Positions 40,177 to 64,000 of a stretch of DNA of 64,000 bases are shown piece by piece. Position 1 is the stretch's first letter. The number at the start of each line of letters is the position of its first letter. Location: positions 1,736,001 to 1,800,000 of the forward strand of contig OZ251235.1 of the NCBI GenBank assembly GCA_965240325.2. The letters run 5' to 3'. The position numbers and the translations under genes are program-made. The DNA is from Rebecca billardiae RCC1528 (Eukaryota > Protista > Haptophyta). The notes beneath the pieces were generated by a model. It saw nothing but the letters and a program-made list of their open reading frames with translations. It did not search any database and was not told where the DNA came from.

Positions 40177-40293
40177 GATCCCGTTTGTTGAGAAAGGCCG
40201 TGTCCGAGAACGCAGTGCTTGCCCAGGACCGGACCGGAATCCTCCGTTGACGTTGGCCTCGGACGCGTCGTCATCGTGCTCGGAGCGAGCTTC

Positions 40294-41196: not shown

Positions 41197-41494
41197 TCCG
41201 ACTTTGAAGCGACTACCAGTATAATCAGTATCTCGCCGTACGCGCTGCCGCAGCCTTAGTTAGTATGCCGTTCGCCCTCGGCAAGTCGGGGTAAGTGCGG
41301 TGTTCGGCCTCCGATGAGTCTGACGCCGCATGCTGCAGGAGTAGCAGCTAGATAACTGCCAACTGGCTCCGCGGCCGCCCATCATATTCATAACCTGATT
41401 AAACTCGCGCGCCGCTCCGGCTCTGCCAGTCTAGTTGCAGCATCTTAGTAGTAGTTGAGTCCGCGAGTCACCGATCGGCAGTTACCAGCCACTA

Positions 41495-42967: not shown

Positions 42968-43101
42968 CGGCGCGATGGGGTTGTCGATAATACTGTGCTG
43001 CAATGGCCGCCTCGATGAGGTGCGGCAACGCGCCCCTCACCTGCCTGCGCCGGTCTGTTTTGTGGCGGCGGTCGGAGCATCGCACGCTCGATCTCCGAAT
43101 T

Positions 43102-44229
43102 CAAGGGCGTTCCCGGGATCCTGCCACACGCTCCCGAAAAGCAAAGCCCCCCCTGGGGGGGCTTTGCCTTCCGGACTGGCGCTGCGCCAGTGGCGGCCGC
43201 CAACCCGGACTGCGGCGCACCAGCGCTTGGCGCGCGCGCGGCGCGGCTTGCTGCGGCCGTCGAGTTGCCGTGCGAAGGCGGCGCGTTGCGTGCGTGGCAT
43301 CGGATCGCTACCGTGTTCCGCACTGCGCCCCGCAGCTCGCTCCTCGTCGACTTCGCCGCGCCTACGATCAGCGCGCATGCGAGCGTCGCCTCGGAATGAG
43401 CAGCCCGCGCCGGCCTCAGCCGTGAGCGCCCGCCTGGCGCGCGATGCGATCAACTCGGGGCACGAGCTGCGGCTGGACGAGGAAGCATGTGCCTGCGCGC
43501 AAGCCTCGCCGCCTTGACACACCGATCGTGAGCAGGGCATGCACCTTGCACGCAACTATTCTTCTTGCCCTTGCGAATGTCGCGGTGCCCTTGAAAAGAC
43601 TCCTCATCAGAGCAACTACTCAAGCATGTCATGACAGCAGCCACGCGCGCAGGCGATGCATACAGATGTACACAAGCCGCTGCGCGCACACGCAACCCGA
43701 AGACTCCTATTCATCACTTCAGGGCGCTCGCGGTCTGTTGCTTAATCTCCACTGCATGCAAGGCTCGTGCAGGCTGATCGGCATTCGTCGACAGCCGTCT
43801 GAAGCTGCATCAACGCGCACGATCGGTGTCTCAAGGCGGCGAGGCTTGCGCGCAGGCACATGCTTCCTCGCCCAGCCGCAGCTCGTGCTCCGAGGTGATC
43901 GCATCGCGCGCCAGGCGGGCGCTCACGGCTGAGGCCGGCGCGGGCTGCTCATTCCGAGGCGACGCTCGCATGCGCGCTGATCGTAGGCGCGGCAAAGTCG
44001 ACGAGGAGCGAGCTGCGGGGCGCAGTGCGGAACACGGTAGCGATCCGATGCCACGCACGCAACGCGCCGCCTTCGCACGGCAACTCGACGGCCGCAGCAA
44101 GCCGCGCCGCGCGCGCGCCAAGCGCCCATTGAGGCCAGCGCGCCTCGCGAAGCGCGCTTTCATTTTCCCGCGCTTTGTTTTCGCGCGTGAGTTTTTATTG
44201 GCGCATGACCCGCGCGGGGAACGCCCCTG
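43102..44229. mobile_element. Non-autonomous fold-back element: 13-bp outer TIR plus 308-bp internal inverted arms
   Basis: CAAGGGCGTTCCC (43102-43114) vs the reverse complement of 44217-44229, CAGGGGCGTTCCC. Arms 43223-43530 / 43818-44125 with about 5 mismatches; spacer 287 bp. No TSD found, so the outer limits are less certain. Confidence 0.7.
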
Positions 44230-45689
44230 GAGACTAAGAGAGACAGAAAGTTCACGAGTCACAACCTGTCCGGTTAAGACCCGGACTGCCACTGCCGCGT
44301 GCAAGCACTGCGGCCGCAGGCTTGTCCCCTACACCCCTGGCTCGGGGGACGGCTGCCGTGGCGGCGGTGGGTGCGTGCTCGCCGAGCGTCCTAGCGGTCG
44401 ATTGCGGGGCGTTCCGTGGCGGCACGCTGGGCGGGGCGGGCCCCAAGACGTAGGGGAACGTCGACAAAGCAGCCCGCTGATGTCTCTCCTCGCTCGTCGC
44501 CCTTGCGGTTGGCGCGCGCAACCACTTGCGGGCTTGAGCTTGTGCCGAGCGGTCACTTCCTGCCAGCCGACTCGACATGTGGGGAGCCTGGGCGCGATGA
44601 GATGGCTCGGGGAGGTGGGGGTATGTATGCACAATGTATACGTACACGCGCGCTGGACTTCCGACCCCGCACGCCGCCTGAAAGAGGTCACGTTAGGCAC
44701 GCGTCGCGCTCTCGCGTTTCAAACGGTGTGTGCCGCACGACATTTCCAGAGTCACGGATCACTGATCGAGCTGCTTTCCTGGTCGCCCATAGCACAGATA
44801 AGCCTACCCGACTAGCCCCATGCGTGACGGCCGGGTCTTGAGTGCTATGGCACCACTTGTAGCAGCTTCTTGCACGCTAGGCACTGCCACAAGCGCCGCG
44901 AGCCAGCTTCGTGAGCATTTGAACGCAGACACAAGGTGCGGAGGCAGTCTTCAGGGCGTGGCAATGGCATGGGAGTCCGCGTCTAGTGTTGTACACGCAA
45001 TGCGACGGCGCGCACACGCGCGACTACGTGCCACAAGGCCGGTGATACCCGCGAGCCGCCACGCTCACGCGCCCGTCGCTCCTCCAGCCGCCGCTTGGCG
45101 ACGCCGCCCGGACTCAGCGACGACACTGGTCGCGGCCTCCCGGAATACAGGGGGGGGGGGGGGGGAGGGACCTGTATTTACCCGTCCAGGGGTTTAGGAG
45201 ATAAGCCGCAGGGCGTCCGGCGAGACCCACTGAAGCCCCAGTGCGGCCCGAGGTCCTCGATGGCGGCTTTCGACGGCCGGCCCATCTGACCCACCGTGCG
45301 CCCACGGCCGGTGCCGGACCGTCGGGGGGCGTCACAGCCGCGGCGAGGTTCGTGTGGGCATGCCAACTACTCGGGCAAAGACTCCCCCACCAGGTGCGTG
45401 TGCGTGATGCGCGTGTTGTCCCATGCGCTCGTGCGGGCGGGCGCGTCCTATTTCAGCGAGGCGGGCAGATTGAGTGCTTGGTGTTCGCAAATGCGACGAT
45501 TTGCGGGCATGCGATGGGTGTGGAGGGGAGCTATGTGATACCCATATGCCAGGCCGCACGTGTCTGGACTGTACTTTTGTGTGATTGTCATGCCGCGTGC
45601 GTTTTGGGGCTCACGCATGCATGCCTGCACCCACGCGTGTGCCGCCCGCATTCGAGCGCGCAGGGACGGGCGCGAGGAAGCGGAGCGTT

Positions 45690-46380
45690 GATGCGCGCAC
45701 GCCGGGCAAGGTTCCCACGCCAGCTGTTCCTCGGCCGCGCCTCGAGGGCGAGCTCCCTGACTCGCTCATCGGCAAATACTGGCGTGATGCCCACTTTGCC
45801 AACGGGACGGGCAATGACATGCACGGTGGCGCGCGCGCTCTGGCTGCTGCTCCGCTCATTCTGGTGCTCTATGCGCTGATGACGCTCTCGCAGGTCATTG
45901 ACCTGTTCGGCACGACCGTCGTTCACCCCCTCGTGAATGCCACGCGGCACCAGCGTAAGGAGGCTCGGCACGAGCGCCTGCTGCGAGCGCTCTCGGCCCC
46001 GGATATCGATTGGAGTCGCTACAAGCCCGCGTGGGTGGCGGAGACCGAGGACGAGCCCGACAGCTACGGGCTGTGGCCGATCGTGCAGTGCCTACGCGAC
46101 ACCCGCTTCATCGCGGTCTTCGCCGCACACCCCATTGCGAGCGGCAGGCAGTGGCAGCCGACGGACGTGCGCTTCTCCACAGCGACGCTGGCAGCGGGGA
46201 TGCTGCGGCATCAGGCGACAGGCTGCCTGCATACGCTCTCGAATAGCTCAAAATGGGGCAACGCGCTGAAGCCGCAATGGGCACCGTTGCTCGCGCCGGA
46301 CGGCCCCTACGTGTGGCAGCTGCTCGAGCACCTCCTCGCGTGGCGGTCGAGGGCCACAACGCGCCCGCTGGATGCGCGAG
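45690..46380 (+). other. Orphan coding-like segment inside the TIR element
   Basis: The core of ORF 45585-46712 has balanced globular composition (many W/Y/F/D/E), unlike shadow ORFs; start and end are unclear. Confidence 0.45.
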
Positions 46381-46449
46381 GCGGCGTCTCCACAGCTGAC
46401 GTGGCTCACGCTCACGCGCACACGCAGCCTTCGCCGGTGGCTGGCGTCG

Positions 46450-47560
46450 AGCACGCTGCTGCCGCTGACCGGCCTGTCCGCAGCTGGGTTCGGGTGTGGG
46501 TCGAGGAGGATGAGGCGATTCGCAGCGACCAGGTTCAGACCAGCGCCGCCAGCCTTCGTCGAGATGAAGAGGACGCGCGCCTTCGAGCCAAGGGCACAAA
46601 AGTCAGCGATGACGCCCTATCAGACTGCCTCACTGCGCCATGCAGCTCGACGATGCGCCAGCCGTCACGCCGCCAGCCGCCAGCGTACTCCTTCTCCAAT
46701 GCCTTGCGGTAGAGCGACAGCACCTCCGTGTGCGCAGCGAACACGACGATCTTGTCGTCCGTGTGATCGAGCACCTCCGTCAGAAGGCGCAGAAACACTC
46801 TGTAACTCGCAGCTTGGTGGACGCAGCGAGTGCAGCTGGGACGAGTCCAGCCAATTCTGCTCGAGGTGGCGAGAGAGGGACTGGATCTTGGGCTCGAGAC
46901 TGGTGCCGGCGAGGGCGGGGTGCGACGAGATGCCGACCTGGATGCCCGACCGTGCGAGAGTGCGAAGGCGTTGATGGGCCCCACGACGAACTGCTCCCAG
47001 TACTGCTCGGAGACAGCGGCGCCGGGGTCAGCCAGGTTGATGAGTGAGTGAGGGCCTTCAGGTCGTTGCTGTCAGGCGTGGCGGTGAGCAGCAGCCGCTT
47101 AAGCGGCCAGAGCGAGTGCACGTAGGTCACCAGCGCAGTATTGTCGTTGTAAAGCTCGTGCGCCTCGTCGAACACCCCGAGGTGGACGCGTGCTTTCGAG
47201 GCAGAACGGAACTGGCCGTACGAGAGTACAAGCCAGTGCGCGCCCGTCATGAAGGCGGCGATGCTGTCGTCCGCTGACGGGCCGACAACGCGCACATCTT
47301 GATCGGGACAAATCCATCGCATGTCTCCTTCCCACTGCTTCACCAGCGTCGCCTTGGTGACGATGAGCACCCGCTCAGACCCCATCCGGTCGGCAACCAT
47401 AGCTCCGACCGCGGTCTTGCCGTACCCCGTACCAGCGGCGACTATGAAGCCGTCGCGCAAGCGGAGGCGCCCAATGACGATGTCTACTACATCCTCCTGG
47501 TCTACACGTGCCTCGAACGCAGGCCTTGGCGCTGCATGAGGCGAGCGCGGCAGGGCGGGG
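46450..47560 (-). pseudogene. SNF2-family (SF2) helicase remnant, frameshifted and internally deleted
   Basis: Walker A AGTGYGKT, LIVTKATLVKQW, DEAH and LLTATP. In other frames: DKIVVFA..ELHG and VLFISTKAGGAGLNLVAANRLILLDPHPNP (SNF2 helicase-C motif). Confidence 0.88.
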
Positions 47561-48135
47561 CGGCAGAGCGCAGAGTGAGTAGACGTGGAAACGTAGGCCC
47601 CACCGCGCGACGAGGAGAGGGTGCACGACACGCCCCACGCGCGGGATCACCTTGATAGGGGTTGGGCATCATGTCGAAGCCCTCAACACGGCCGAGTCGG
47701 CCCTCTCGTCGAGGCTCACCTGGGCCGCTGCCTCTCGCCGGACGGACTCGTCCCTCGCCCCATGGGAGAGGGGAGGTAGTCCGGGTCTCAACCGGACAGA
47801 GTCACAACCAAGGCCGCCGTTCTCGCCTGCCTGAGCTGTGTGCGTCTCTTATTCTTAGTAAACTGTACGCCGGTCTGTGGCCGAGTACTAGTGGGAGTAG
47901 TGGCGTGCTCTTGCGTCTGAGCAAGGGGGTTCAATTGAGGTCATGGGTTCAAAACCCCCAGTTTCCAGGTCTCTCTTCGGAGAGCGTGCGATGAAGGATG
48001 GCGCGGCAACCTGCCACCGTGAGCCTTACGCACGTTAAAACAAATAAACTGTACCCCCGCTCGACGTCGCGTTGTCGAGTCGCCGCCGTGTCGCTGGGGT
48101 CGGCGGTCCCAACGCAGTCGCGTCGTGCTGGGCCC

Positions 48136-49138
48136 ATGCTCCGCCTCGCGTCAGTCGCATCCGCCGCGTCGCGCGCGGCGACTCGCGTCCCGCCCCCCAC
48201 CGCTCGGTCCCTCCCCGTCTCCCGAGCTCGCACCCTCGCCACCCTCGCCACGCACGATTCTGCGGACGGCACAGCCGTGCGTCACGAGCTCGAGCAGCAC
48301 GTGACGGCGACAGACGCGGGCGCGATGGGCGAGACGCTGGCGACGACACGCAGCTTCGCGCGCGGCGAGCTGGTCTACGCATTTACCTCGCGCACCGCCG
48401 AGGACAATTCCCGGTACTCTATCCAGGTCTGCCGCACCCTGCACACCGCGCACGAGGGCCTCTTCGCGCTGATGAATCACAGCTGCAAGCCCAGCTGCTA
48501 CCTGTGGCCGCTGCCACTGGCGGGCGCGGACAGCGCCGATGCGTGCGAGGCAAAGGAAGAGGGCCTCGTGCGCGTCGGCGTCTTCGCCGCGCGCGACCTC
48601 GCGGCCGGGGAGGCCGTCAACTTCGACTATCAACAGACGGAGTGCGTGCGCGCGCGGCGCGGCGCGGCGCGCGCCATGCCGCCGTCGCTGTCAGCGCTTC
48701 AGGGGCCTGTATGCTGCACCGAGGGAGAGCGCGATCTGACAGGCACACATCGCACGCACGCGCTACTTGCGCGCCTGCGCATTGCTTTCGGCTGTCGTGG
48801 GTGGGTCACAGCACGCGTCGAGCACGCCCGCCCCCTCCGTCTGACGTGTGTGGGCGTATACCACCCCGCGCCCTGGCGCACCGCCGCGTGCTGCCCGCCG
48901 ACAACGCAGATGGGAGATGGCGACACCGTTCGAGTGCGCCTGCCCCGGCGTGGAGCAGCGCTGCGCGGTCGCCGGCGCCTCCGCCCTCCCACCGGACGCG
49001 CAGCGCGCCTTGCTCGCCGACCCGAGTGCTCGGCTCTGGCCGCACGTCTCGGAGCAAATCCGCATGCTCGACCAGCAATCTCAGAGGCCGTTGTCGGAGC
49101 CGGGGGCGGCCGCTGCCGGCACCGCGCGCGGTGACTGA
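48136..49138 (+). CDS. SET-domain protein with post-SET Cys motif and mitochondrial-type presequence
   Basis: MNHSCKP, AARDLAAGEAVNFDY..TE|WEMATPFECAC joined by intron 48642-48909. Confidence 0.88.
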
Positions 49139-50094
49139 CCCGCTCCCGCCCAGTGCCGCTTCTAATCTGCTGTCCCGCCGCCTGGTACATCTGTAAGCCG
49201 ATCAGGCACTGACATCACTTGCAGTGACACTCCGCGAAGATTTGAGGCAGGTTGCACAGGAAACTTGTTGGTGTTACATTTCTGAGAGACGGCGCCTCTG
49301 AAGGATGGCGCCCGCCCACTCGCCGCTCGTGGGTGGCGCGCGCCTCGCGTGTCGATGCAGCCCCTCATCATGACTAGCTGAATGCGCGTGTCGTCAGGAC
49401 TTGTCCGCGTGCGGCTACATACAACCGGACCCCGCCAGGACCAGCAGACCGTCGATGATTCGGGTTAGCTCGGGGTGGTCAGTGGCAACGTCGGATAGAG
49501 AGAGCTGGCTGAGACGGTGAGGACTGAGACGGTTGCCGTTGCGTCAGCACCACGTCCACGGCATCCGATCTGACCATGCATGCGACGCGAGCCGCAATCA
49601 GCCCGCCCTGACCTGCCCTGGGCCTGGCGCAACGTGAACGGGCATCCGTGGCGGGACCGCGGCCGATCGGGCATCGGCCGCCACGAGGGCGGGTGCGGGG
49701 TGGGCCAGTGGGCCGGGCCGGCGAGAAGCAGCCAAGGGCTGAAGGGGCTGTTAGTGGAGCGTGGCCGATGTGCGTAGTTACACCAGGGTCCACGCACTGG
49801 CACTCTGTGGCTGCCGAGGACACAGCTGACAGCAACGGTCCACTACCAAGTAAAACCAAGGGCCGTACGGCACTACGTACGCTTGCAACTGCGAGCCTGG
49901 ACAGGCTGGACTCAGACCGTCAGACTACGGCCCTTGGTCAGACGCACCCACCTGCAGGCTGCACAGTCCCGCACAGGGACAGGGACCGCCGAATACTGGT
50001 ACCGTGCGTACGTAATCCTCCTGACGATTCGTCCTCGGACGCGGGCTACATACAGCAAGGTAGGGCGTCATCGTAGGTGCTCGGAGCGAGCTTC

Positions 50095-50997
50095 ATGTCG
50101 GGCGATGCGGACGCGCAGTTCTCCCGCGGCATGCAGCACGCACACAGCGGCAACTTGGACGCGGCGGTGCCTTTGTTCAAGCAGGCTGCCGCGCAGGGCC
50201 ACGTCGAGGCAATGTACACGCTCGGCGCGTGCTATCACACGGGCGCCGGTGCGCTCCGCAGCGACCAGCGACAGGCCGTGCGCTGGTTCCGCGACGCAGC
50301 CGAGGCCGGGCACATGCTTTCGCAGCTGAATCTCTCGACCATTTACCGCAACGGCGCACCCGGCGTGCCGATCGACAAGTCCGAGTCCGCGCGCTGGTCG
50401 CGCGCGGCGGCCGAGCAAGGCCATCCGCAAGCGCAGTTCAACCTCGGTAACGACTGCCGGGCGGGCGAGGGCGTGCCAAAGGACGCGGCGGAGGCGGTGC
50501 GCTGGCTGACCAAGGCAGCCGACCAGGGGCTCCCAGAGGCGCAGTACAACCTCGCCAACCTCATCTACGACGGCGAGGGCACGGCGCCCGACCCCAAGGC
50601 GGCCTTCCGGCTGTGGCTGGCGGCTGCTGAGAGCGGGCAGGTGGAGGCGCAGTACACCGTTGGCGATATGTACTTTCGCGGCGACGGCGTGGAGGAGGAC
50701 GAGGACCAGGCGATGCGCTGGCTCCGCCGGTCGGCCGAGCAGGGCTACACCGTCGCGCAGATCGGGCTGGCCGGCCACCTGGCCCTGGGGAAGGGCATCC
50801 GGAAGAACGAGGCCGAGGCTGAGCGCTGGTTGAAGCGCGCGGCGCAGGCTGGGGACCCGCGCGCGGTCCTGCTGATGGGCAGAATGGAGCTGCTGCCGAT
50901 GGCCAGCGAGAGCTTCGTGGCAGGCGAGCGCCGATCGACGAGGCCATCAGGCGGCGAGACCGGGCAGGGCGGACAGGCTGGCCAGCGCCGCCGTTGA
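50095..50997 (+). CDS. Sel1-repeat protein, copy 2
   Basis: Differs from 40294-41196 at 4 nucleotides by my comparison. Confidence 0.92.
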   Translation: MSGDADAQFSRGMQHAHSGNLDAAVPLFKQAAAQGHVEAMYTLGACYHTGAGALRSDQRQAVRWFRDAAEAGHMLSQLNLSTIYRNGAPGVPIDKSESARWSRAAAEQGHPQAQFNLGNDCRAGEGVPKDAAEAVRWLTKAADQGLPEAQYNLANLIYDGEGTAPDPKAAFRLWLAAAESGQVEAQYTVGDMYFRGDGVEEDEDQAMRWLRRSAEQGYTVAQIGLAGHLALGKGIRKNEAEAERWLKRAAQAGDPRAVLLMGRMELLPMASESFVAGERRSTRPSGGETGQGGQAGQRRR

Positions 50998-51230
50998 TCC
51001 GACTTTGAAGCGACTACCAGTACTCTCGCCGTACGCGCTGCCGCCGCGCAGCCTTAGTATGCCGTTCGCCCTCGGCCAGTCGGGGCAAGTGCGGTGTTCG
51101 GCCTCCGATGAGTCTGACGCCGCATGCTGCAGGTAGCAGCTAGATCAGGCTCCATCCGAGAGCGGTCTGGCTTGACGAGCGGGAGGCGATACGACTCTCT
51201 CGACTCACTATGATACTCAGACCCTTGGGG

Positions 51231-53451
51231 CAAGGGAGTCAAGGGTGCCCGCGCCCCAGTGGCGCGCTCGGCGGATGTTGGCACACAGATTTTTGCCCGC
51301 GGCCTGCGGCGGGCGGCGGCGAGGGCGTGCTCCGGTGGCGGAGCGAGCGCACGGGGCACGGCGCTGCGGGCGCGGATGTGCCCGCGAAGCCGGCGCGTGC
51401 GGACGGGCAGTTGCGGGAGAGCATATGGCGCCCTCCTGCGCCGCGCGACTTGCGCCACGCCTCTTTCGCCTCGGCTCAGAGCAGCGCGCACGCACGCGCC
51501 GCCTCAAGGCCAGCCTTGCCGCGCCGCAGCCGGCCGCGCGCGCGCCGTGCGCGGCGTGGTCGGGAAGGAGCGGGCGCTGCTGCCGGGCGAGATGGCGACA
51601 TCGCGTGCGCACGCCATGCCGCCCCGTGGCGCCGCGAAAGGGCACGAGAACGGATCCGCACAGCTGTTGACGAGTGCTGATTACTTGTCGTGCCTGAAGC
51701 CAGACCTGAGCTCGAAGAAGATGATGAAAGAGCATCAGCGCGAGGAAAGCGTCGCACCCAGCACTTCTGCATGACCACGCGGTGATGAACATTCATGTAA
51801 GAGTAGCCCGCGTGCCCGTCTGGCACTGTTCTGTGTCTCAATGATCGTCCCGCCAAGGGTCACGACCGCGAGGCCGTGCACACCATTTGTGACAAGTCAA
51901 AGAGGCATGCAAACGGACCGACGACGCACTCGTCAAGGCGTGGCGGGGCGGCATGGCGTGCGCACATGATGTCGCCATCTCGCTCGGCAGCAGCGCCCGC
52001 TCCTTCCCGACCACGCCGCGCACGGCGCGCGCGCGGCCGGCTGCGGCGCGGCAAGGCTGGCCTTGAGGCGGCGCATGCGTGCGCGCTGCTCTGAGCCGAG
52101 GCGAAAGAGGCGTGGCGCAAGTCGCGCGGCGCAGGAGGGCGCCATATGCTCTCCCGCAACTGCCCGTCCGCACACGCCGGCTTCGCGGGCACATCCGCGC
52201 CCGCAGCGCCGTGCCCCGTGCGCTCGCTCCGCCAGCGGAGCACGCCCTCGCCGCCGCCCGCCGCAGGCCGCGGGCAAAAATCTGTGTGCCAACATCCGCC
52301 GAGCGCGCCACTGGGGCGCGGGCCAAGGGTAGTAAGGGTGAGCAACTCCGCTGGCGACAGCCGCGAAGGTCGGCAGCCCTCTGTTTGCCGCGAGCGGAGC
52401 GGAGCGAGTGCTATCAGCGGCGGAGGGCGCTGAGGCCGCGCACGGCGTGAGGCGCGGCGTCGGCCGAGTCGGTCCGCGGAGGATGCGCGGCGCTCGGCCC
52501 GCTGCGCAGCGGCAGTGCGCCTCACTTTGCCCCGAGCGCCGTCCTCCGCGTCGCCTCCTTCCCGCCTTGGAGCAGCACGCATGTGCGCGCTGCCACCTTG
52601 AAGGCGGCACGGGCTTGCTCAGACGACCGCGCGCGCGTGGCGCGCGACTTGGTCGGCTGCGCGCGCGCGCCGCCGCGGTGCAAGGTAGCGCCACCACATG
52701 CGCGCGCCGTGCCCGCGCGAGCCTTTGCTCACGGCCATCTCATGAGCGTAGTGCTCGCTTGTCTGCTTGCTCTCACGAATGATTTGCTGTGCCTCACGCT
52801 GGCACTCGTCGGGTCGATCAGCGAGGTGTTGAGTGACATTGGATACCCAGGACGAAGGCCTAGTCTTGTCTATTCCTTCTCAGCACGAATGCAAGTGGAC
52901 GCTAAGGCTCCGCATCGATGGTACCAACACTCACGCCGCTGTCTTTTCCAGCTTCCCGTCAGTCCGCAAGTCGGATGCCAAGCAGCATTCGACATGTGTG
53001 TGAGGTCGCACTCAGGTCCGCGCACACGCTCTCGCGCTGGCACGGCGCGCGCATGCGGCGGCGCTACCTTGCACCGCGGCGGCGCGCGCGCGCAGCCGAC
53101 CAAGTCGCGCGCCACGCGCGCGCGGTCGTCTGAGCAAGCCCGTGCCGCCTTCAAGGTGGCGGCGCGCACATGCGTGCTGCTCCAAGGCGGGAAGGAGGCG
53201 ACGCAGCGGACGGCGCTCGGGGCAAAGTGAGGCGCACTGCCGCTGCGCAGCGGGCCGAGCGCCGCGCATCCTCCGCGGACCGACTCGGCCGACGCCGCGC
53301 CTCACGCCGTGCGCGGCCTCAGCGCCCTCCGCCGCTGATAGCACTCGCTCCGCTCCGCTCGCGGCAAACAGAGGGCTGCCGACCTTCGCGGCTGTCGCCA
53401 GCGGAGTTGCTCACCCTTACTACCCTTGCGCGGGCACCCTTGACTCCCTTG
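51231..53451. mobile_element. Fold-back element A (P-like CAAGGG ends), interrupted in its right arm by element B
   Basis: Left arm 51231-51626; right arm 51944-52323 plus 53436-53451; termini CAAGGGAGTCAAGGGT...ACCCTTGACTCCCTTG. No clear TSD of its own. Confidence 0.85.
52324..53428. mobile_element. Fold-back element B (P-like CAAGGG ends) with 7-bp TSD
   Basis: Arms 52324-~52721 / ~53031-53428; termini CAAGGGTAGTAAGGGTG; TSD CGCGGGC at 52317-52323 and 53429-53435. Confidence 0.92.
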
Positions 53452-53576
53452 CCAGTGGCAAGCAAGGAAGGACTCTTCTCCCGGACTCCAAAGTCCAGCC
53501 GGCGGCAGTCCATCGTCAGCCAGTCAGCAGTCCTGTCAGCCACCGATTCGCGCATCAGAATAAAGGCGAACGTGGC

Positions 53577-54312
53577 ATGGCGCCGGCCGCTGGCTCGGGC
53601 ATGTCGATCAAGGAGTGGCTTCTTCAGCTCAAGGCGTTCGCGTCGTCGTGGTGGTATCCGTTCGCAGTTGGCACGTTGAGCTGCCTCAACACCTTCACCA
53701 TCTTCCTGTCTGGTGAGTGCGCTGCGCCAAACGGGCGACGGATCGAGTTGGTCGACCGCCGCGGCCGCGATCGCCCTTCTCGGCCTCCGGCTATCACGCT
53801 CATCACGCCACCCACCGTCCACGTGACTCGCCCGAATCGCAGGTCCACTGGTGATCCTGTACGTTGCGGGCGTCCTCGCGAACGGCGCCAAGCTGCAGCG
53901 CCGCATGGTCGCCGCGCTTGCCAACGCGCTCGGGACGACCATCGGGGCGGCCATGCTGGTGCACCTCATCGACCAGCATGGCGTGGATGCCGTGCTGAAC
54001 GCGTTCCCGTCCATCTTCGGCTCGAAGCACTGGGACCGCTCAAAGGAGCTGATCGACGCGTACGGCTTCGTGGGCACGGTCGTGGTGTCGGCCATGCCGA
54101 TCGTGCTCCACCCAGCTGTGATCTTTGCAATGACGGCGGGGATGTCTCGCGCCAGCCTGCTGACCGCGGTGATGGTGGGCAGGACGATCAAATACACGCT
54201 GATGGCGCAGCTCGCCGTCGGTGCGCCGCATCTGCTGCGCTTCTTCGGCCACCGGGGCGAAGTGCAGGCGCCCCCGCCGAAGGGCGCTGCCAGCAAGCGG
54301 AAGGGCACATGA
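53577..54312 (+). CDS. DedA/VTT (SNARE-associated Golgi) family membrane protein
   Basis: Intron 53713-53842; ANALGTTIGAA, YGFVG..SAMPI, AGMS...VMVGRTIKY. Confidence 0.8.
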
Positions 54313-54848
54313 GGAGGAGCAGGGTTCCATGCAGACCATGTGGCATGTGCCATGTCAAGCGCAGCTGAGGCGGAGCAGTGAGTGCGCTGCGCGTGCATGC
54401 GTGCTCTGGGGACCACCAAAGTCCAAACTGGCGTCGGCACTCTCTGGCTCTGCCGCTCTGACGACTTACGGGCCACCGGCCAGCGAGCGGCCGCCCAGCT
54501 ATCGCGGCCCGCGCGGGCCGCGGGCAATCCAGGCGCATAGCATGTCACCGGCGCTGGCCCATGGCCATCCGGCAGGGGCCTCAGAGTATGGGTGACTCCT
54601 AGGCCGGCCTACTGCACGGCAGTCCAACCGACAGTACTTTGTCAATAATGATATACGATTCATGTCAATGATCATCATTGAAGTCTCGCGCGTGAACTAA
54701 TACTCGGTGGATGCCAACGAGTAGGCCGGCGGCGTGATGGCCCGGCGGCGGGGCCGCCGCGGGCGGCGGGCTCGACTGATAAAGCCGGCGGAACCGATGA
54801 TAGCCGAAATCTTGTCACTGACGACACTCTGTTGGCAGCTGTAGCCGA

Positions 54849-55868
54849 TCAAGCAGACGCTGGCGCCGAAGAATCTTCGGGATCTGCGGAGTCGCCTGAT
54901 GATGCCGGCGGCGGACGATTGAGCAGCAGCTCGCTCTCCCTGCTGCGTTGTGCCAGCACCGGCACGAGCTGCGCCGTGAAGACGAGCAGTGCTCCCAGGA
55001 GAGTCGACCACGGGGGCACCTTGCTGCTCGAAGGCACAAACGCCGCCTGCAGGACGATCGACCCCAGCAGGTCGCAGCCCACCATCTGCACGGTGGCGAG
55101 TGCCGGCCGACCAGCCTTTGTCTCGCGGCTTGCGATGGCCTGTGCAGCATGGATGGCCAGGCCGAGTAACCCCACGCTGCACATGATCACCCACGTGCCC
55201 GCCGAAGATGGCCGCGCCCACACTGGCGACTGCGTGACGACCGCGGCCGCGGGTACACCGAACAGCTGACCAAGGGCGGTGGCGACCACGACGACTTGTG
55301 GATGCACTTTGTGTACACGAGTGAGGTAGCGCATGGCCACAAAGCCAGCAGCCATGGCCAGCGCACAGCCGAGGGCGCACGTGATGCCCGAGATGTAGCT
55401 ACCAGCAGCTGCGTCCTGCCCCGCCGACGTGGGATCGGCGGCAAGCGCAACTCCGCTGATAGTCAGGGCGGCAGCGAGTGCATCGTGCGACGCCAGAGGC
55501 TCGCCGAGCACTGCCCATCCGATCGCAGCAGCAAAGAGCGGCATGGATGCCATGATCGTAGACGCCACGGGCAGGGACAGGAAAGTCACCGAAAAGAAGT
55601 AGAGTGGGCCAGCAGCACACGCGCAAGCCGCGCGTGCGAGCAGCACTGGCCAGTGCTGAATCGCCTGGCGCGGAGCCGCCTGCGATACGTGGAGCGCCGG
55701 TGGAACGGCAAGCGCGACGGTGACGACGGCCCTGGCAGTCAGGCATTGGAGCGCACTCGCGCCAAAGCGCTGATCGCCCAATTTGACCAGGAGGGAAAGC
55801 AAGGCATAGCCAAAGCCCACGAAGGGGAACACAGCCGCTGCCGCAAGCGAGACCCCCGGGGTCGGCAT
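54849..55868 (-). CDS. EamA/DMT-superfamily transporter (SLC35G-like)
   Basis: About 10 TM helices; LSLPVASTI..SMPLFAAAIGWAVLGEPL. Confidence 0.88.
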   Translation of the reverse strand: MPTPGVSLAAAAVFPFVGFGYALLSLLVKLGDQRFGASALQCLTARAVVTVALAVPPALHVSQAAPRQAIQHWPVLLARAACACAAGPLYFFSVTFLSLPVASTIMASMPLFAAAIGWAVLGEPLASHDALAAALTISGVALAADPTSAGQDAAAGSYISGITCALGCALAMAAGFVAMRYLTRVHKVHPQVVVVATALGQLFGVPAAAVVTQSPVWARPSSAGTWVIMCSVGLLGLAIHAAQAIASRETKAGRPALATVQMVGCDLLGSIVLQAAFVPSSSKVPPWSTLLGALLVFTAQLVPVLAQRSRESELLLNRPPPASSGDSADPEDSSAPASA

Positions 55869-56113
55869 CGTGCCGCGGGCGCTGTGCTTTCAGCACGGCA
55901 GCGCCTCCAGAGTCCAGAAACACGCGGGCGGGTCACTCTTGATCACGGCCCCGTCGTTTCTGTGATCCGCCATTCCCCCTTGCCAACCGGCATGCGTCCG
56001 GGCGCTCCCGGACCAGCCGCCAACTGTCGTCATATTTCCCATCGCGCGGTCAAGCCGGGGATCAATAGTAGGGGACGGCCTTGCCGACGCCAACATGCTC
56101 ACTCGCCTTTGAT

Positions 56114-57450
56114 TTGGTACCCATGCACTTCCTGTCTTCCTGGTGGGCCTGACGACGTCGACGACGACAACAACGACATCCACCATGGCGACCAATAACA
56201 TTATCAACGTGCTCACACCACTGCCACTGCTGCAAGCTTCGACCAGTACCGCACTACAGACCGGAATCCGAGAGCTGCGCCCTCGTGCCTGTGTCTTTAA
56301 ATCATAGAATTAGTAGGGGGTTACAACATTCGGCTCATGAGGCAACACTATTAATAATCATCAATCAGATTCAGACCGCTCATCAGGCTACTTCATGGGT
56401 CTGAGTAGCTAGTTTATAATAGTGAACTGGCCTCTCTGTGGCTAAGCCTGATTATGAATAATAGGACGCTTACAAACTTGGTTGATGAAATTAATTTGTA
56501 CATCATAGACCACCAAGCGGCAAGCTGTCTCCGGTTGGTGAGCGAAGGCCAGTGTCAGTGACCACGCGCACCGCCTTCGCGGGCACGCAACTACCGCAGG
56601 CAACTACCGTGCATGATTCGCGGTAGTTGCACGCAACTACCGCACGCAACGTGCATGATTCGTCGCGAATCGTGCATGATTCGCGACGAAGATTCGCGAC
56701 GAGCGTGTGAGTCCGCCAGGTATGATACTGCTGATTAGGCGGCGATGATTTACCGTCGGAAGATTCGCGACGGTGTGTATCCGCCAGGTATGATACTCAC
56801 TCTATGATTTAACGACTGCTGATTAGGCGGCGATGAATTTTATGTATCTAGCTGTTCGGAACGAAGTAGCACCCGCTTGTTGTAGCGCGTTACAAGACTG
56901 CTGATTATTGCTCGCAGATTCTTCACCTAACTTTCAATATATCTGTGCAGCGCTAGTGTTCCCGATTGTTGAGTCGCATTGCTATGTGTTCTCATCCAAT
57001 GTGCATATGTTGCATATTATTGTGATTAGAAAGCGGCGGTGGCGCGAAGACTGTGTGGTTTACAGCTTGTGTCATTGTTCTTGTGAGAATTCTGCGTTTT
57101 TTAATGACCGCCATGAAGTTGTCATTAATTCCTACGAGCACTATCTGAGGTTGTTCATTGGCTGTTGCTAGCAATCTCGCATGATCTGTTGCAATCACGC
57201 CCGATCTGCGCTTCTTTGAGAATTTCCCAATAACTCGGAAGTTTGTAGTAGTAGTTGGTACCCATGCACTCTTCCTGGCGGGCCTGACTAGCTAGTGAGC
57301 TACGTCGACGACGACAACAACATCCACCATGGCGATCAACATCAACGTGCTCACACCACTGCCACTGCTGCAAGCTTCGACCAGTACCACGACAGACGAA
57401 TCAGGAGAGCTGCGCCCTCGTGCCTGTGTCTTTAAATCATAGAATTAGTA
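56114..57450. repeat. Pair of ~200-bp imperfect direct repeats flanking a ~940-bp lower-GC segment
   Basis: TTGGTACCCATGCAC...TTTAAATCATAGAATTAGTA at 56114-56315 and 57255-57450; the copies differ mainly by short indels. Confidence 0.9.
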
Positions 57451-57581
57451 AGGCGTGTCAACCGACAGTACATTTGTCAGTCACAGATGACAGTACACGT
57501 GTCTACTTTACAGTACAGTAAGCACTGTGAGTTCAGAGTGATGACACTAAGCTAACGTCACTCTGAACTTCAGGATGGACG

Positions 57582-59219
57582 ATGCGCGCACCTCCGCCGC
57601 CGGTCGTGCTGTTTGCTCTCGTCAGTCGCGTCTGCAGCTTACCATCATGGCCGTTCCAACGCTCGTCCATCCGGCACGACGTCGCCATTGCGCCGGCCTC
57701 CAACGGTACACGCGGCCGGCCACCCGGGGCGGAGGCCGGCATCGCTCTGAAGCGCGGTGTGTCCGTGCCGCGCAAGGAGCGGCCGACGCCGTGCAACGCG
57801 CGCACCCTCTTCCAGGTGGCGGAGGACATCGCAAGCGCCGGCGGAGTGCGCACGCGTACGCGGCCTGTACGTGTGTTCGTGTACGACCCGTTCGTGGTGG
57901 CGCGCGCCTGCGAGAACCGGCCGAGCGACACGTTCTGTGCCACGGGCCTGAGCCACTCGTCGTGTGGCAAGCGCCAGCGGCTGATGGGCGCGCTTGGTCG
58001 CCGGCTGAACCAGTCGAGCGCGCTCGTGCAGCGCACGCTCGATCCCAGCCGCGCTGATCTGTTCCTGCTCCAGTGCTACAGCCTCTCGCGCGACACGCGC
58101 GTCCCGGGGCTCGTCCACCTGAGCAGCCGCACCGCGCATCGGCACATGGTAGTGGCGGCGCGCACGTTCGAGCCTGCTGACCGGTGCGAGCTACGCACGC
58201 TGCGCCCCGTGCAGGTGTACAACCTGCAGCGCCCCGCGTACTGCGAGCTCGCGCCGCGCGGCTTCGACCTCTCCTCCCTGCCGTACCCTTCCGACGGGCC
58301 ACGCGACGAGGGCGCGCTGCGCGTCGGCCGCGCGCGCCCCGTGCTTGCCACTTTCATCGCCAACGTGCACGGCGGCGCGGCGGCGCTGCGGTACAACGTG
58401 CGGCGCGCGTGCCGCGCGCAGCTCCCCTCGCGCTGCACGCACGAGACGCCCAACCGCCTCAGCCACGCCGAGCTGCTCGCGCTCAAGGCGCGCTCGCTCT
58501 TCTGCCTCGAGGTGGCGGGCGACACGCCTTACAGACAGAGTCTCACTGAGTCCCTTCTGGCCGGCTGCGTGCCCGTGCTGCTCTCGGCGGAGATGGAGCC
58601 GTCGCTCGGGCTGTTCTGGCACGGCTGGCGCAACGCGTCGCGCGTGCGCGCCACGTGGCACGGCGGGAGCGAGTGGCCGCCGGACACGCCGCGCTCACGG
58701 AGGGGCCCGAAGCCGGTCGGCGCCGGCGGCGCGGCGCGCAAAGCCGCGGCCGAGGCGCGCTCCACTGCAGGCGCGCGCCGGCTCGGCGACGAGCCCGTGC
58801 TGGGGACGGCGGTGGCGGGGCCCGTGCGCACGGCTTCGGCGCGCCTGCCGCCCGCACAGCCCGGGGCCCCGCTCGAGCTCGCCGTGCGCTCGTTCGGAGA
58901 GCTGCTTGCGCGGCTTGAGGCGCTGCGCGACGACGGGGTCACGGTGCCGCGCATGCAGGCCGTGATCGCCCGGCACGCGCCCGCGCTGTGGTACGCGCTC
59001 GACCTGCGCGAACGCGGGCCGTCAGCGGGAGCTGCGGCGACGCGCGGGGGCGGCGACGGTGGCCCCGATGCACTCGACACGCTCTTTGCCACGGCTGCAG
59101 CGATTGCGGACCGGATGGATGCCGAGTGCAATCGTCCCAAGCAGAAGCGGGGTGCTGGCGGCCAGCAGCAATCCAGCATCACTATTCGTGACATTTCACT
59201 TCGGCTTCGCGCTAGATGA
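57582..59219 (+). CDS. Exostosin-family (GT47) glycosyltransferase
   Basis: VFVYD, TLDPSRADLFL, SLFCLEVAGDTPYRQSLTESLLAGCVPVLL. Confidence 0.85.
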   Translation: MRAPPPPVVLFALVSRVCSLPSWPFQRSSIRHDVAIAPASNGTRGRPPGAEAGIALKRGVSVPRKERPTPCNARTLFQVAEDIASAGGVRTRTRPVRVFVYDPFVVARACENRPSDTFCATGLSHSSCGKRQRLMGALGRRLNQSSALVQRTLDPSRADLFLLQCYSLSRDTRVPGLVHLSSRTAHRHMVVAARTFEPADRCELRTLRPVQVYNLQRPAYCELAPRGFDLSSLPYPSDGPRDEGALRVGRARPVLATFIANVHGGAAALRYNVRRACRAQLPSRCTHETPNRLSHAELLALKARSLFCLEVAGDTPYRQSLTESLLAGCVPVLLSAEMEPSLGLFWHGWRNASRVRATWHGGSEWPPDTPRSRRGPKPVGAGGAARKAAAEARSTAGARRLGDEPVLGTAVAGPVRTASARLPPAQPGAPLELAVRSFGELLARLEALRDDGVTVPRMQAVIARHAPALWYALDLRERGPSAGAAATRGGGDGGPDALDTLFATAAAIADRMDAECNRPKQKRGAGGQQQSSITIRDISLRLRAR

Positions 59220-59505
59220 GTAGCATGTCGTCTTAAGGTCGGACCCTATTGTTGAACGGGCGAGGCTCCGTATTGTGAAACGGATATGCAGTTGTAGTAT
59301 TCTCTCTATGTAGCAGCAGGCTGATGACGCCGAGGCGATGGGACCATCGCGGCTACTGCCGTTTGCGCCTGGCCAAACAGGAGCGTCGTCCATCGAGCGG
59401 ATCGAGCCCAAGAACGTGGCCATAGAGACATCCGTGCTCGTGATGCGCACGTGGCACGGGCCGAGGCTGTCAGCTCGACGGCCGCCATGCGGGTCCACCC
59501 TCTCT

Positions 59506-60357
59506 TCAGGCCGCGCCCGCCGCGCAGGCTGCGGGCAGGAAGAGGAGCTGGCCGCAGAGCACGGCCGTGAGCAGCGCTGAGAGCACGTACGCCAACACCA
59601 GCCAGACGTCATCGCCGATCCGGACGATCGTCGTGCCCAGCCGGATCAGGCAGCCGACGAAGCGGAGGACGGTGGTGGCGGCGGAGAGCTGGCCGGTGCA
59701 CCCGTTCCGAGCGTTCAGCATGATCTGCGGCAGGTAGCCGCACAGCATCGACACCGGCTGCGCCTGCGCGATGAGTGGCTGATATTTCACCGGCAGCAGC
59801 CACAGGGCTGCATGCAGCGCCACGCCCACGCTCAGCGCGAGGACGGCATGCGCGAGGCCGGGGGGCTGCAGGACCCAGAAGATGGCGATGATCGCGAGAT
59901 TCTGCGCCGTGATGATCACGTTCTCGCCGTACGTGTCCCACGGGTACCCGAGCCGCGCGTGGTAGATGGCAAAGGACGAGTACATGGGTATCTCCGAGTA
60001 CGCGGCCGCGAGCGAGAGGCCCAGCACGGAGCGGTTGCGCACGAGCTTGACGATCTGCGGGAGCTTGAGGCAGAGCGATCCCAGCATGATGCCCGTGCCA
60101 AAGAGCATGGCCAGCAGCTTCTCGTGCTTCTCCGCCAGCGCGCGCAGCCCGCTCACCTGCTTGGGCTGGGCGACGGTGCGCCGAGCGGCCGGTGCTTCAG
60201 CACCACCGCGGAGTCGGGCGGCAGTCAAGACGAGCGGCCGCACAGTCGATGGCGCTGCATGCACCACCGACCGTGCATGCGCCGCCACGAAGCACGGGCC
60301 GGCGCAGCACAGCAACGCGATGCACGCGCGTCGCGTCGCGCCCTTCCTCGATAACAT
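59506..60357 (-). CDS. MPDU1: PQ-loop protein, MPDU1-like (mannose-P-dolichol utilization)
   Basis: LKLPQIVKL...SVLGLS, YPWDTYGE, LPQIMLN..NGCTGQLS; N-terminal signal plus RLRGG. Confidence 0.85.
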   Translation of the reverse strand: MLSRKGATRRACIALLCCAGPCFVAAHARSVVHAAPSTVRPLVLTAARLRGGAEAPAARRTVAQPKQVSGLRALAEKHEKLLAMLFGTGIMLGSLCLKLPQIVKLVRNRSVLGLSLAAAYSEIPMYSSFAIYHARLGYPWDTYGENVIITAQNLAIIAIFWVLQPPGLAHAVLALSVGVALHAALWLLPVKYQPLIAQAQPVSMLCGYLPQIMLNARNGCTGQLSAATTVLRFVGCLIRLGTTIVRIGDDVWLVLAYVLSALLTAVLCGQLLFLPAACAAGAA

Positions 60358-60591
60358 GCCGCCGCGACGCCACCCGCTGCAGTCTGAACTGCACTGACGA
60401 GAATGACGATGCACAAAAGCGTCGTCAGATGATCAGTCATGATGAGTACGACAGTCGTATGATACTCTGCTCTATACTTCGTCATGTTCGGTTGCTGTTA
60501 CCGTCGTAGCGACGTAGTCGTAAGAACGTCACGGTCAGCACAATGCAGTCACCACTATATCAACACGGTGGCAGCAGTTCAATGTCTTCTG

Positions 60592-62328
60592 TCAATCAGC
60601 CGCTGGCGCCAGCCCTGGGTCAGCCGCGGCAGATGACGGCTGGGCTCCCCCTGCTGCATGTGCCGCGCACCATGCGATGCAGTGGGGCTTGTGCACCTTC
60701 CACGAGCTGCGCAGGTGCTCACGCGAGCAGAAGACCGCCACGTGGCACCGCTCGCACTTCTTCAGACCACGGCCCGTGCGTCCGCAGTCGATGCAACACT
60801 GGGAGACCACCTCGCGCTTTCCAGCGAACCCAGCCAGTATCTCGCGCACCGCATCTCCGACGTCGGGATCGAGCTCTAGGCCACGGCGCAGCAGCCGTGC
60901 GCCCTCCTCCACGTCACGCGCCACTCCCTCACCCGACAGCGTCATCGCCCCCAGCGTGACATTCGCGCGTGCGCTCCCGCCAGCAGCAGCCAGGCGGTAC
61001 CAGCGAGCTGCCTCGCCCCAATCCTGCTGCATATCCTTGCCTTGCGCGTAGCACAGGCCCAGACATTCCTGCGCTTGAGTATCGCCCTGCTCGGCCGCCA
61101 GCCGGTACCAGCGCGCTGCCTCGCCCCAATCCTGCTGCACACCCTGGCCACGCGTGTAGCACAGGCCCAGACGGTACTGCGCTGCAGCAAAGCCCTGCTC
61201 GGCCGCCAGTCGGCGCCAGCGCACCGCCTCGCCCCAATCATGCTGCACGCCGTCGCCACGTTCGTAGCACACGCCCAGATTGTACTGCGCTCCAGCGTCG
61301 CCCTGCTCGGCCGCCAGTCGGTACAAGCGCACCGCCTCGCCCCAATCCTGTTGCACGCCGTGGCCTTGCGCGTAGCACACGCCCAGGCTGTGCTGCGCTT
61401 CAGCAAAGCCCTGCTCGGCCGCGAGTCGGCGCCAGCGCACCACCTCGCCCCAATCATGCTGCACACCGTCGCCATGTTCGTAGCACACGCCCAGATTGTA
61501 CTGCGCTTCAGCAAAGCCCTGCTCGGCCGCCAGCCGGAACCAGCGCACTGCCTCGCCCGAATCCTGCTGCACACCGTTGCCATGCTCGCAGCACGCGCCC
61601 AGATTGTACTGCGCTTCAGCAAAGCCCTGCTCGGCCGCCAGCCGGAACCAGCGCGCTGCCTCGCCCCAATCCTGCTGCACACCGTCGCCTTGCGCGTAGC
61701 ACGCGCCCAGATTGTGCTGCGCTTCAGCAACGCCCTGCTCGGCCGCCAGCCGGTACCAGCGCACTGCCTCGCCCCGATCCTGCTGCACACCCTGGCCTTG
61801 CCCGTAGCACGCGCCCAGATTGAACTGCGCTTGAGCACAGCCCTGCTCGGTCGCCAGCCGGTACCAGCGCACTGCCTCGCCCTGATCCTGCGCCACACCC
61901 TCGCCATGCTCGTAGCACGCGCCCAGATTGTGCTGCGCTGCAGCAACGCCCTGCTCGGCCGCCAGCCGGTACCAGCGCACTGCCTCGCCCCGATCCTGCT
62001 GCACACCCTGGCCTTGCCCGTAGCACGCGCCCAGATTGAACTGCGCTTGAGCACAGCCCTGTTCGGCCGCCAGCCGGCACCAGCGCGCGGCTGCCTCGAG
62101 GTCCACGGGCTGACCAAGCGCGCCTGTCGCGCAAATGCCGCCCATCCTCAGCTGCGCATCGGCAAAGCCGCGCTCAGCGGCGAGGGTGTACAGGCGAAAG
62201 GCTTCGCGCCCATCTTGCGCGATGCCGTCGCCATCCTCAGCCCGCCGCGCTAGAAGGAACGTCGCACGCGCGTCGCCGCGCCCCGACTTGCGCCAGAGGA
62301 GACCGACCGCCGCGGAAGAGTTTGCCAT
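60592..62328 (-). CDS. Sel1-repeat protein with C-terminal MYND zinc finger
   Basis: About 13 SLRs, 10 of them near-identical 36-aa units; CIDC...CERC...FCSREH...W..HKPHC. Confidence 0.93.
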   Translation of the reverse strand: MANSSAAVGLLWRKSGRGDARATFLLARRAEDGDGIAQDGREAFRLYTLAAERGFADAQLRMGGICATGALGQPVDLEAAARWCRLAAEQGCAQAQFNLGACYGQGQGVQQDRGEAVRWYRLAAEQGVAAAQHNLGACYEHGEGVAQDQGEAVRWYRLATEQGCAQAQFNLGACYGQGQGVQQDRGEAVRWYRLAAEQGVAEAQHNLGACYAQGDGVQQDWGEAARWFRLAAEQGFAEAQYNLGACCEHGNGVQQDSGEAVRWFRLAAEQGFAEAQYNLGVCYEHGDGVQHDWGEVVRWRRLAAEQGFAEAQHSLGVCYAQGHGVQQDWGEAVRLYRLAAEQGDAGAQYNLGVCYERGDGVQHDWGEAVRWRRLAAEQGFAAAQYRLGLCYTRGQGVQQDWGEAARWYRLAAEQGDTQAQECLGLCYAQGKDMQQDWGEAARWYRLAAAGGSARANVTLGAMTLSGEGVARDVEEGARLLRRGLELDPDVGDAVREILAGFAGKREVVSQCCIDCGRTGRGLKKCERCHVAVFCSREHLRSSWKVHKPHCIAWCAAHAAGGAQPSSAAADPGLAPAAD

Positions 62329-62382
62329 CGGAGCTCGATCGTCGTCAGATGACGAACTCGCAGCAGTTTACTCATACTGTAC

Positions 62383-63440
62383 GAGTGCACTCGAGCGAAA
62401 ACGTGCCAGGCTAGGCATGCGCGGCCCAGTGCGGGCTAGGCATCGGGGGCGATGCCTAGCCCGGCCAGGCTAGGCATTCGCCCATACCCTCGCGTCTTCA
62501 GAACTTTCGGAAACGAAAGTCGCGCAAAGGCGGCCCCGGTCTTCTTTCACGGCGGCGCAAGGGGCGCGGGGGCGCTGGCTCGCGATCCGAAGGGCAGTCG
62601 CTCGCGACCTCGCTTGGGCGGCGGCAGCGGCGCTGCGGCATACTGTTTGCCACCCGCGCGGCTGTGTGCGATCGCGCGGTCCCGTTCGTCGCCACGCCGC
62701 GCGCGACCGTTCACGGCACAGTCTTTCCGCACTGTGAGCACCCCTTGCCAGCGCACGGCGGCGGAGAGCCCAGACAGCCCGTCACGCGCGCGACGTCCTT
62801 GTGGGATGCGATGTACCCAGGTTCTTTGGGTTCCCGGAGGCATGCGCTTGCCCACGGGGTGGGCAAGAGGATCATGGACGACTGCTGCGCTGTCCATGCC
62901 TCGTTGACCGATTGGCAGACGATGACTCATCTTGCAGCAGTAGAGAGTGGTCTGGATGCTGAACAGGCTCACCAAAACGCAGGCGCATGCTAGCATTAGG
63001 GTGAGTACATCGCATCCCACAAGGACGTCGCGCGCGTGACGGGCTGTCTGGGCTCTCCGCCGCCGTGCGCTGGCAAGGGGTGCTCACAGTGCGGAAAGAC
63101 TGTGCCGTGAACGGTCGCGCGCGGCGTGGCGACGAACGGGACCGCGCGATCGCACACAGCCGCGCGGGTGGCAAACAGTATGCCGCAGCGCCGCTGCCGC
63201 CGCCCAAGCGAGGTCGCGAGCGACTGCCCTTCGGATCGCGAGCCAGCGCCCCCGCGCCCCTTGCGCCGCCGTGAAAGAAGACAGGGGCCGCCTTTGCGCG
63301 ACTTTCGTTTCCGAAAGTTCTGACGACGCGAGGGTATGGGCGAATGCCTAGCCTGGCCGGGCTAGGCATCGCCCCCGATGCCTAGCCCGCACTGGGCCGC
63401 GCATGCCTAGCCTGGCACGTTCGGTCGCTCGAGTGCACTC
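62383..63440. mobile_element. Fold-back element with ~435-bp arms and GAG..CTC ends
   Basis: Arms 62383-62816 / 63005-63440, spacer 188 bp; TGTAC directly repeated at 62378-62382 and 63441-63445; subterminal GGCTAGGCAT repeats. Confidence 0.9.
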
Positions 63441-64000
63441 TGTACGTTACAGGTGGATACGGGTGATCTGGACAGTTTTTTTTTTTCCCCCTTTATAACG
63501 GTGGCCGCAACTCACGCGGAGGCCTCCCTGGGAGCATTGGGGTCGAAGGGGCGCCAGGGACGGACTTCAGGGGGTCCCTGGAGTTCCGCCGCAGCGCGCT
63601 TTCTGCGCTGCGGGCCCGTCTCCGCGCGTGGCGGCCGCAATGGCACTGTCCAATTAGCCCCTGGCACTGGCTGAGGCATGGGAATCGAGCTCAGAGACGC
63701 GCGCGCGGAGGAAAAGCGTGTGCAGCGGCTCGGACGGTTGCTCTGGGACCTACCCACGCCAGCGCAACCGCGCCTTGCCTCGGAGTCCGCCCTTCCTGAG
63801 TCCGCGCACGCGCCTTGCGGCTTGAAACGCTGGCGTTCGCCCTTGTGCGCGGGACTCACGAAACAAGGCGAAGGCGGCGAGAAGCGCGACCTGGCGCGTG
63901 CGCAGACGACGTCTCACGACCAGGTGAGTTCAGCGAACATCGTGCGCCGTCGTGGCGACCCGCCAGTGGGCGCTCGTGCTCGTTCGCCCACGAGCCCTCG

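Follow-up and report, generated by a model that had tools for sequence, protein, structure and literature searches.

Why should four fold-back elements in a single stretch of DNA share a length of about 1.1 kb? The question is raised by positions 1,736,001 to 1,800,000 of contig OZ251235.1 (assembly GCA_965240325.2) of the haptophyte Rebecca billardiae RCC1528, i.e., a 64-kb stretch that was analyzed at its full length and is called the window here. The assembly comprises 72 Mb in 41 contigs; the sequence is eukaryotic in look and GC-rich (64 to 82% GC per 2-kb segment, with a single exception at 54%). An inverted-repeat search of the window yielded four large inverted repeats, all within its last third, and no further inverted repeats with arms of at least 80 bp. 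They are element A (43102-44229; 1128 bp), element B (full span, 51231-53451; 1109 bp once a nested element and its 7-bp duplication are removed), element C (52324-53428; 1105 bp), which is the element nested in B, and element D (62383-63440; 1058 bp). Their arms measure 308 to 436 bp with 98 to 99% complementarity, and their spacers measure about 188 to 317 bp. The search confirmed the positions and lengths that a first-pass annotation had assigned to the four units, and our data also support its description of them as non-coding transposons with long arms. The same annotation had proposed that unrelated families converge on one size, a pattern that we trace mostly to the common descent of A, B, and C. 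We consider it likely that the four units are non-autonomous cut-and-paste fold-back DNA transposons belonging to two lineages, and that the size of A, B, and C is inherited. A common ancestor would have passed a length of about 1.1 kb to these three families, and the length would have been kept since the inner arms gain very few insertions or deletions (indels). D and its sister family D2 would be unrelated to them and served by a different enzyme, their similar total length, reached via a different geometry, being a coincidence or the sign of at most a soft constraint.

According to the annotation, the bodies of the elements could not be aligned with each other and the families were unrelated. 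For A, B, and C this does not hold, as their arms align over the whole inner 300 bp and do so co-linearly. We compared one arm each of A, B, C, D, D2, and five fold-backs from the flanks (F, G, H, J, and K) by pairwise local alignment scored against dinucleotide shuffles, with the reverse complement serving as a built-in control (the fold-back scan beyond the window covered 305 kb in total, i.e., the window and flanks, the flanks being biased by size). Pairs among A, B, C, F, G, H, and J reached z values of 7 to 26 in the forward orientation (81 for B and H), while the reverse-complement scores among pairs of this group remained below 4.5, which speaks against an artifact of composition. The comparisons of D and D2 with these families gave z values of <3, except for one reverse-strand value of 5.7 (C versus D2), and D and D2 matched each other only. 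The arm of K matched none of the others (largest z value, 4.1). The multiple alignment of A, B, C, F, G, H, and J is co-linear from the tip through the arm end. All seven have tips that read CAAGGG or a close variant (the CAAGGG group), and their inner arms are 55 to 65% identical across about 296 positions with only 1 to 8 gap columns. Several blocks are conserved, including one, GCGCRCGCCATGCCGCC, that is located precisely at the arm-spacer junction. A search of 312 kb with an arm profile recovered paired arms only, with estimated totals of about 1100 to 1140 bp, and left D and K unmatched. The conserved inner arms exhibited no consistent period-3 signal of a coding origin (p = 0.011 for one block of three; the rest were not significant).

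Judged from their sequences, A, B, and C are best regarded as diverged members of one large superfamily. Its defining features are the CAAGGG tips, an arm length of about 400 bp, a spacer length of about 300 bp, and the conserved junction block. The number of independent units among the four is therefore only two. Homology and co-linearity of their arms lead us to attribute the shared size and geometry of these three families to descent. The suggestion that at least two types of transposase are involved was borne out by the target duplications, which are 7 bp long for B and C and 5 bp long for D.

The 7-bp duplications are documented by the nested pair. The main part of B (51231-52323) ends in the left copy of the duplication made by C (CGCGGGC, plus strand; 52317-52323); C, with arms at 52324-52721 and 53031-53428 and a spacer of 309 bp, is inserted in the right tip of B, and the last 23 bases of B follow (53429-53451), the first 7 of which are the right copy of the duplication. 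The uninterrupted target of C is supplied by the other arm of B. A second copy of C (L042) is flanked by a perfect 7-bp duplication (GCCAGGC), an intact B copy of 1109 bp just outside the window (L061) by CCCGTAT, and F by TATGGGC. No matching target duplication was found at the B copy in the window, the flanks of which differ. About 40 full or nearly full-length copies of C were found among the matches listed. For A, B, and C, the listed copies number about 33 to 42 per family, and these counts are lower bounds.

Element D has inverted ends (GAGTGCACTC...GAGTGCACTC), arms at 62383-62819 and 63002-63440, and a spacer of 182 bp, and it lies between two plus-strand copies of the duplication TGTAC (62378-62382 and 63441-63445). 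Each arm carries four GCTAGGCAT motifs within its outer 95 bp, which are probable binding sites of a transposase. A single strand of D is predicted to fold into one 437-bp hairpin (-735 kcal/mol). The family has about 20 copies; a genome-wide search with the D terminus pattern recovered 18 pairs of 975 to 1199 bp, a further pair that spans 2193 bp and contains a nested C, and 8 unpaired ends. The sister family D2 is 83% identical to D, measures 1075 to 1077 bp, and has at least 23 copies. The two families together span 1055 to 1077 bp, end in GAG...CTC, and exhibit a perfect 5-bp duplication in 26 of 30 copies. D and D2 form a lineage separate from the CAAGGG group, with a different geometry (i.e., arms of about 440 bp and a spacer of about 190 bp).

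Element A belongs to the CAAGGG group by body and by tip, and its ends set it apart. The annotation had described it as a unit with inverted arms; its coordinates and length stand, but the palindrome is internal (43223-44125), and the two ends are unlike, with only a 13-bp tip in common. The left end (43102-43222; plus strand; 121 bp) starts with the tip CAAGGGCGTTCCC, forms a small hairpin of its own, and past the tip has no match in the reverse-complemented right end (44126-44229; minus strand; 104 bp), which terminates in ...GGGAACGCCCCTG. Between the ends lie the left arm (43223-43533; plus strand; 311 bp), which shares 58 to 65% identity with the inner arms of B, C, F, G, H, and J, a spacer (43534-43814; 281 bp; 56% GC), and the right arm (43815-44125; minus strand), which is 98% complementary to the left one. 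The spacer occurs in both orientations among copies, being inverted relative to the unlike ends in L029 and L030. About 33 full or nearly full-length copies, 92 to 100% identical, were found among the matches listed, and both ends are intact in about 25 of 30 copies.

The 20 full copies of A (1126 to 1130 bp) have unique flanks, and none shows a target duplication (2 to 10 bp, in any register). No long direct repeats between the flanks and no conserved flanking base were found at A insertions. A paralogous empty site comes from a small palindromic repeat, which is uninterrupted in L007 and carries A in L015. There, A is inserted between GGAG and GGTG, with 0 bp duplicated and one T missing. 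The target repeat itself (L007:777-1229 and the L015 flanks) has arms of 82 to 118 bp with 100% identity and a total length of 283 to 368 bp. At L011, an A copy interrupts the left tip of F five bases in, with about 39 bp of F absent. Helitron-like or recombinase-like targets and long, offset, or inverted duplications were considered for A, and none fits; a DIRS-like structure was also rejected, as no internal region is complementary to the ends. A thus shares the body and tip of the families with 7-bp duplications yet integrates differently.

Between B and H, the outer 80 bp are about 57% identical, and 40-bp windows further in are about 82 to 97% identical, the spacer included. Such comparisons show that change, whether by evolution or by exchange, is much faster in the outermost 80 to 120 bp than in the body. 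This outer part behaves as an exchangeable module, with tips swapped between bodies.

Regarding the enzymes, B and C would be mobilized in trans by a transposase of the P-superfamily type. The RNase H N-terminal domain of P transposases has exactly one match in the genome, inside an intact open reading frame (ORF) of 1317 amino acids on another contig (L062:2645-6595, corresponding to G000:C21:1532845-1536795, minus strand). The C-terminal 552 residues match the three P-type domains in the correct order, i.e., the N-terminal RNase H part, the GTP-binding insertion, and the C-terminal RNase H part (E = 2e-8 [PF21787], 0.0036, and 0.15, the latter two being weaker hits), and this part matches the solved Drosophila P transposase weakly (E = 0.2). 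The first 765 residues have no Pfam match, and terminal repeats were not seen around the ORF. The nearest protein-atlas clusters of the ORF are P transposases (score, 0.96). The ORF is a putative trans-acting source for the 7-bp families, i.e., a candidate and nothing more. No autonomous partner with the same ends was found for the CAAGGG group, the sole P-type ORF being without matching ends. For D, the genome-wide search with the terminus pattern yielded no long autonomous pair, and neither D nor A has a transposase candidate. Two inverted inner-junction motifs 4024 bp apart (G000:C1:3404087-3408127) could stem from nested copies piled up at one place or else from an autonomous CAAGGG-group element.

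Is the size then constrained? Six families of the CAAGGG group have full lengths of 1105 to 1139 bp, with a standard deviation of about 14 bp (arm and spacer lengths summed by hand). Longer arms go with shorter spacers and vice versa, which is trivially expected if only the arm-spacer boundary shifts. Allowing one mismatch, the junction motif occurs genome-wide 417 + 442 times (control, 45 + 47), and exact inverted motif pairs 308 to 338 bp apart identify 178 elements (control, 0). Thus, of the genome-wide class of size-constrained hairpins of about 1.1 kb that had been envisaged, the large population exists, but the hard size limit is contradicted by longer variants. Two junction motifs stand in tandem, 381 to 389 bp apart, at 45 dispersed loci (control, 0). 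Each of the tandem motifs is followed by B-type spacer sequence (e.g., G000:C1:1469032-1469783), three motifs occur in a row at two loci, and two sequence subtypes are dispersed across many contigs. The duplicated-unit loci amount to about a quarter of the exact-motif elements of the B/H type. We infer that they would be transposed variants in which the inner arm end and the spacer are duplicated, with total lengths of about 1.5 or 1.9 kb. Since 45 dispersed loci imply such lengths, a hard limit is not supported, and the scarcity of inner-arm indels suffices to keep the length by inertia.

Several points weigh against the account given above. The CAAGGG group, D/D2, and K make three independent lineages within 0.94 to 1.14 kb, which descent alone does not explain. 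The spacers stay at 281 to 329 bp though most cannot be aligned between families. The 1.5-kb variants are read from motif coordinates and printed matches, not from full sequence. A has the same body and tip as B and C and makes no target duplication, so it cannot use their integration chemistry. Finally, the P-like ORF is single copy and has neither CAAGGG repeats nor arm homology beside it (2.6 kb and 0.4 kb past its ends were covered), which leaves its link to the 7-bp families unproven.

A rival account is a real shared constraint that would draw independent fold-back lineages to about 1 kb, for which long-palindrome stability, a hairpin-dependent step of transposition, or chromatin spacing could be responsible. 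Lineages with no detectable homology to each other measure 1104 to 1140, 1055 to 1077, and 939 to 955 bp, all with arms of about 300 to 440 bp and spacers of about 180 to 330 bp; indels are strongly depleted in the inner arms, where identity is about 60%; and the only large inverted repeats in the window are the four considered here. However, the lineages number only two or three, and the smallest of them, K (L037:497-1439; AAGATAG tips, 296-bp arms, a 285-bp spacer, and about seven copies, with no obvious target duplication in one readable copy), came from 1.5-kb flanks that are too short to hold larger elements. Another fold-back (L035), cut by the edge of the locus, has a spacer of about 445 to 460 bp, and the variants of 1.5 to 1.9 kb have spread widely. 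We therefore regard a shared constraint of this kind as improbable. A broader version, to which we give little credence, would place the lineages of about 1 kb under a shared hairpin-dependent step and have A integrate by a mechanism undescribed for eukaryotic terminal-repeat transposons. One possibility for such a mechanism is a snapped-back single strand ligated at a nick or a blunt break. Within this version, the almost indel-free inner-arm body may be the unit of selection, hopping between mobilization systems by tip swap.

Another alternative is that the geometry stems from the formation of fold-backs, with hairpin-templated or template-switching repair after excision setting a starting length of about 1 kb. 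The arms are indeed homogenized continually. D and D2 differ by 13%, the two arms within one copy differ by 0.4 to 0.5%, and the D/D2 changes comprise 1031 mirrored and 45 one-arm changes; the same concerted pattern, in weaker form, is found within A. The arms of a copy thus evolve together in every lineage. Per-site compensatory selection would be far too weak in a stem of 440 bp, and the cause is therefore inferred to be gene conversion or hairpin-templated repair between the arms, which would preserve an almost perfect hairpin for long periods. The GC content is 67 to 78% in arms and 56 to 58% in spacers in all three lineages, a contrast that GC-biased conversion would fit. Spacers diverge faster than arms and can invert; homology between the spacers of different families is mostly undetectable, except for B-F, F-H, and B-C in reverse orientation and B-H in direct orientation. 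Homogenization of the arms, inversion of the spacer (in some A copies), and tandem duplication of the inner arm end with the spacer all point to recombination or repair inside the elements. However, there is no direct evidence of de novo fold-back formation, and no intermediate forms were seen, and we consider an origin of the common size in this process very unlikely.

Assembly artifacts from long-read chimeras are effectively refuted as a source of the palindromes: no point in their favor was found, every family occurs at tens of loci with unique, differing flanks, exact ends, and target duplications, and nested insertions carry duplications that match the other arm of the host element, so the four units are true mobile elements.

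Inherited size in A, B, and C, with D as a separate lineage, remains our preferred account. In their genomic setting, the insertions of A, B/C, and D are close to gene ends: a minus-strand sulfotransferase ORF has A about 100 bp upstream (43003-43102), a minus-strand Sel1-repeat/MYND-finger ORF has D 55 bp upstream (62328-62383), and B and C lie about 240 bp beyond the end of a Sel1-repeat ORF. Fold-backs are also nested in each other's tips (L036, L038, L042, L059, and L011), with D 27 bp inside H, D in a tip of G, C in a tip of D, D2 in a tip of J, and A in a tip of F. This pattern hints at preferred insertion, either into these terminal regions or into open sites used in common. Two other repeats in the window are genic. 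A 1.08-kb direct repeat (40276-41353 and 50077-51145; 98% identity) is a duplicated Sel1-repeat gene rather than a transposon, and a 108-bp tandem "satellite" (60878-62149) encodes the 11 repeat units, each of 36 amino acids, of a Sel1-repeat protein.

A new size-limited class of unrelated hairpins would have been notable, but most of it comes down to common descent within a single abundant superfamily, with one unrelated family besides. The data instead provide a well-resolved case of long-term concerted evolution of transposon arms, along with terminal modules exchanged between conserved bodies and a sister family whose insertions lack any target duplication. This genome is thus a good system for studying how fold-back transposons are maintained and mobilized. 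For annotation purposes, several hundred such elements are located near gene starts, and they could form long double-stranded RNA if transcribed.

We found no description of these elements in haptophytes in the literature, and the comparisons below are with systems from other organisms. Drosophila Foldback (FB) and Tetris (PMC4079207) resemble them in their hairpin architecture and in that most copies are non-coding. The elements described here have arms of unique sequence and duplications of 7, 5, or 0 bp. FB, in contrast, has arms made of tandem sub-repeats and duplications of 9 bp. Membership in FB was rejected, as the arms are not among the 20 listed of 27 direct-repeat families, and D carries only four dispersed 9-mers per arm. 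Duplications of 5 bp are typical of Transib and of some hAT groups, with which D and D2 share strict 5-bp duplications; the ends of D (GAGTGCAC...) are presumably unlike the termini of both. Of the features of MITEs (miniature inverted-repeat transposable elements), the non-coding nature and the high copy number are present, but lengths of 1.06 to 1.14 kb exceed the usual upper bound of about 0.8 kb, and A lacks a duplication.

For the P superfamily, the expected duplication of 7 to 8 bp was observed, at 7 bp, for B, C, and F and was absent from A (0 of 20 copies) and from the B copy in the window. In this superfamily, excision makes widely staggered cuts, after which terminal remnants of about 17 nt stay behind. 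Two tip remnants were seen here, both anecdotal. One is a 16-bp sequence ending in CCCTTG (51212-51227), 3 bp left of B, which looks like the leftover right tip of another CAAGGG-type element, and the other, 18 bp long, is a CAAGGG... tip that directly adjoins an A copy of L007 on its left. BuT5, a MITE of 1 kb from the Drosophila repleta group, owes its mobilization to a divergent P element (PMC3698922). The elements of the CAAGGG group resemble it in being about 1 kb long and non-coding and in their putative P-type partner; no autonomous partner was identified for them.

The closest known system is Galileo, a Drosophila transposon of the P superfamily whose long terminal repeats are fold-back-like. 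It makes a 7-bp duplication and has chimeric copies in which arms have been exchanged and the flanks do not match (PMC3573991). The elements of the CAAGGG group share with it the 7-bp duplications, the very long inverted arms, and the predominance of non-coding two-arm copies, and a P-type transposase gene is present in this genome. They differ from it in that no autonomous copy with these ends was found, that A makes no duplication, and that the host is a GC-rich alga-type eukaryote and not an insect. Moreover, the arm length of Galileo varies widely within every subfamily (PMC3573991), whereas the elements described here keep an almost constant geometry despite an identity of only about 60% between families.

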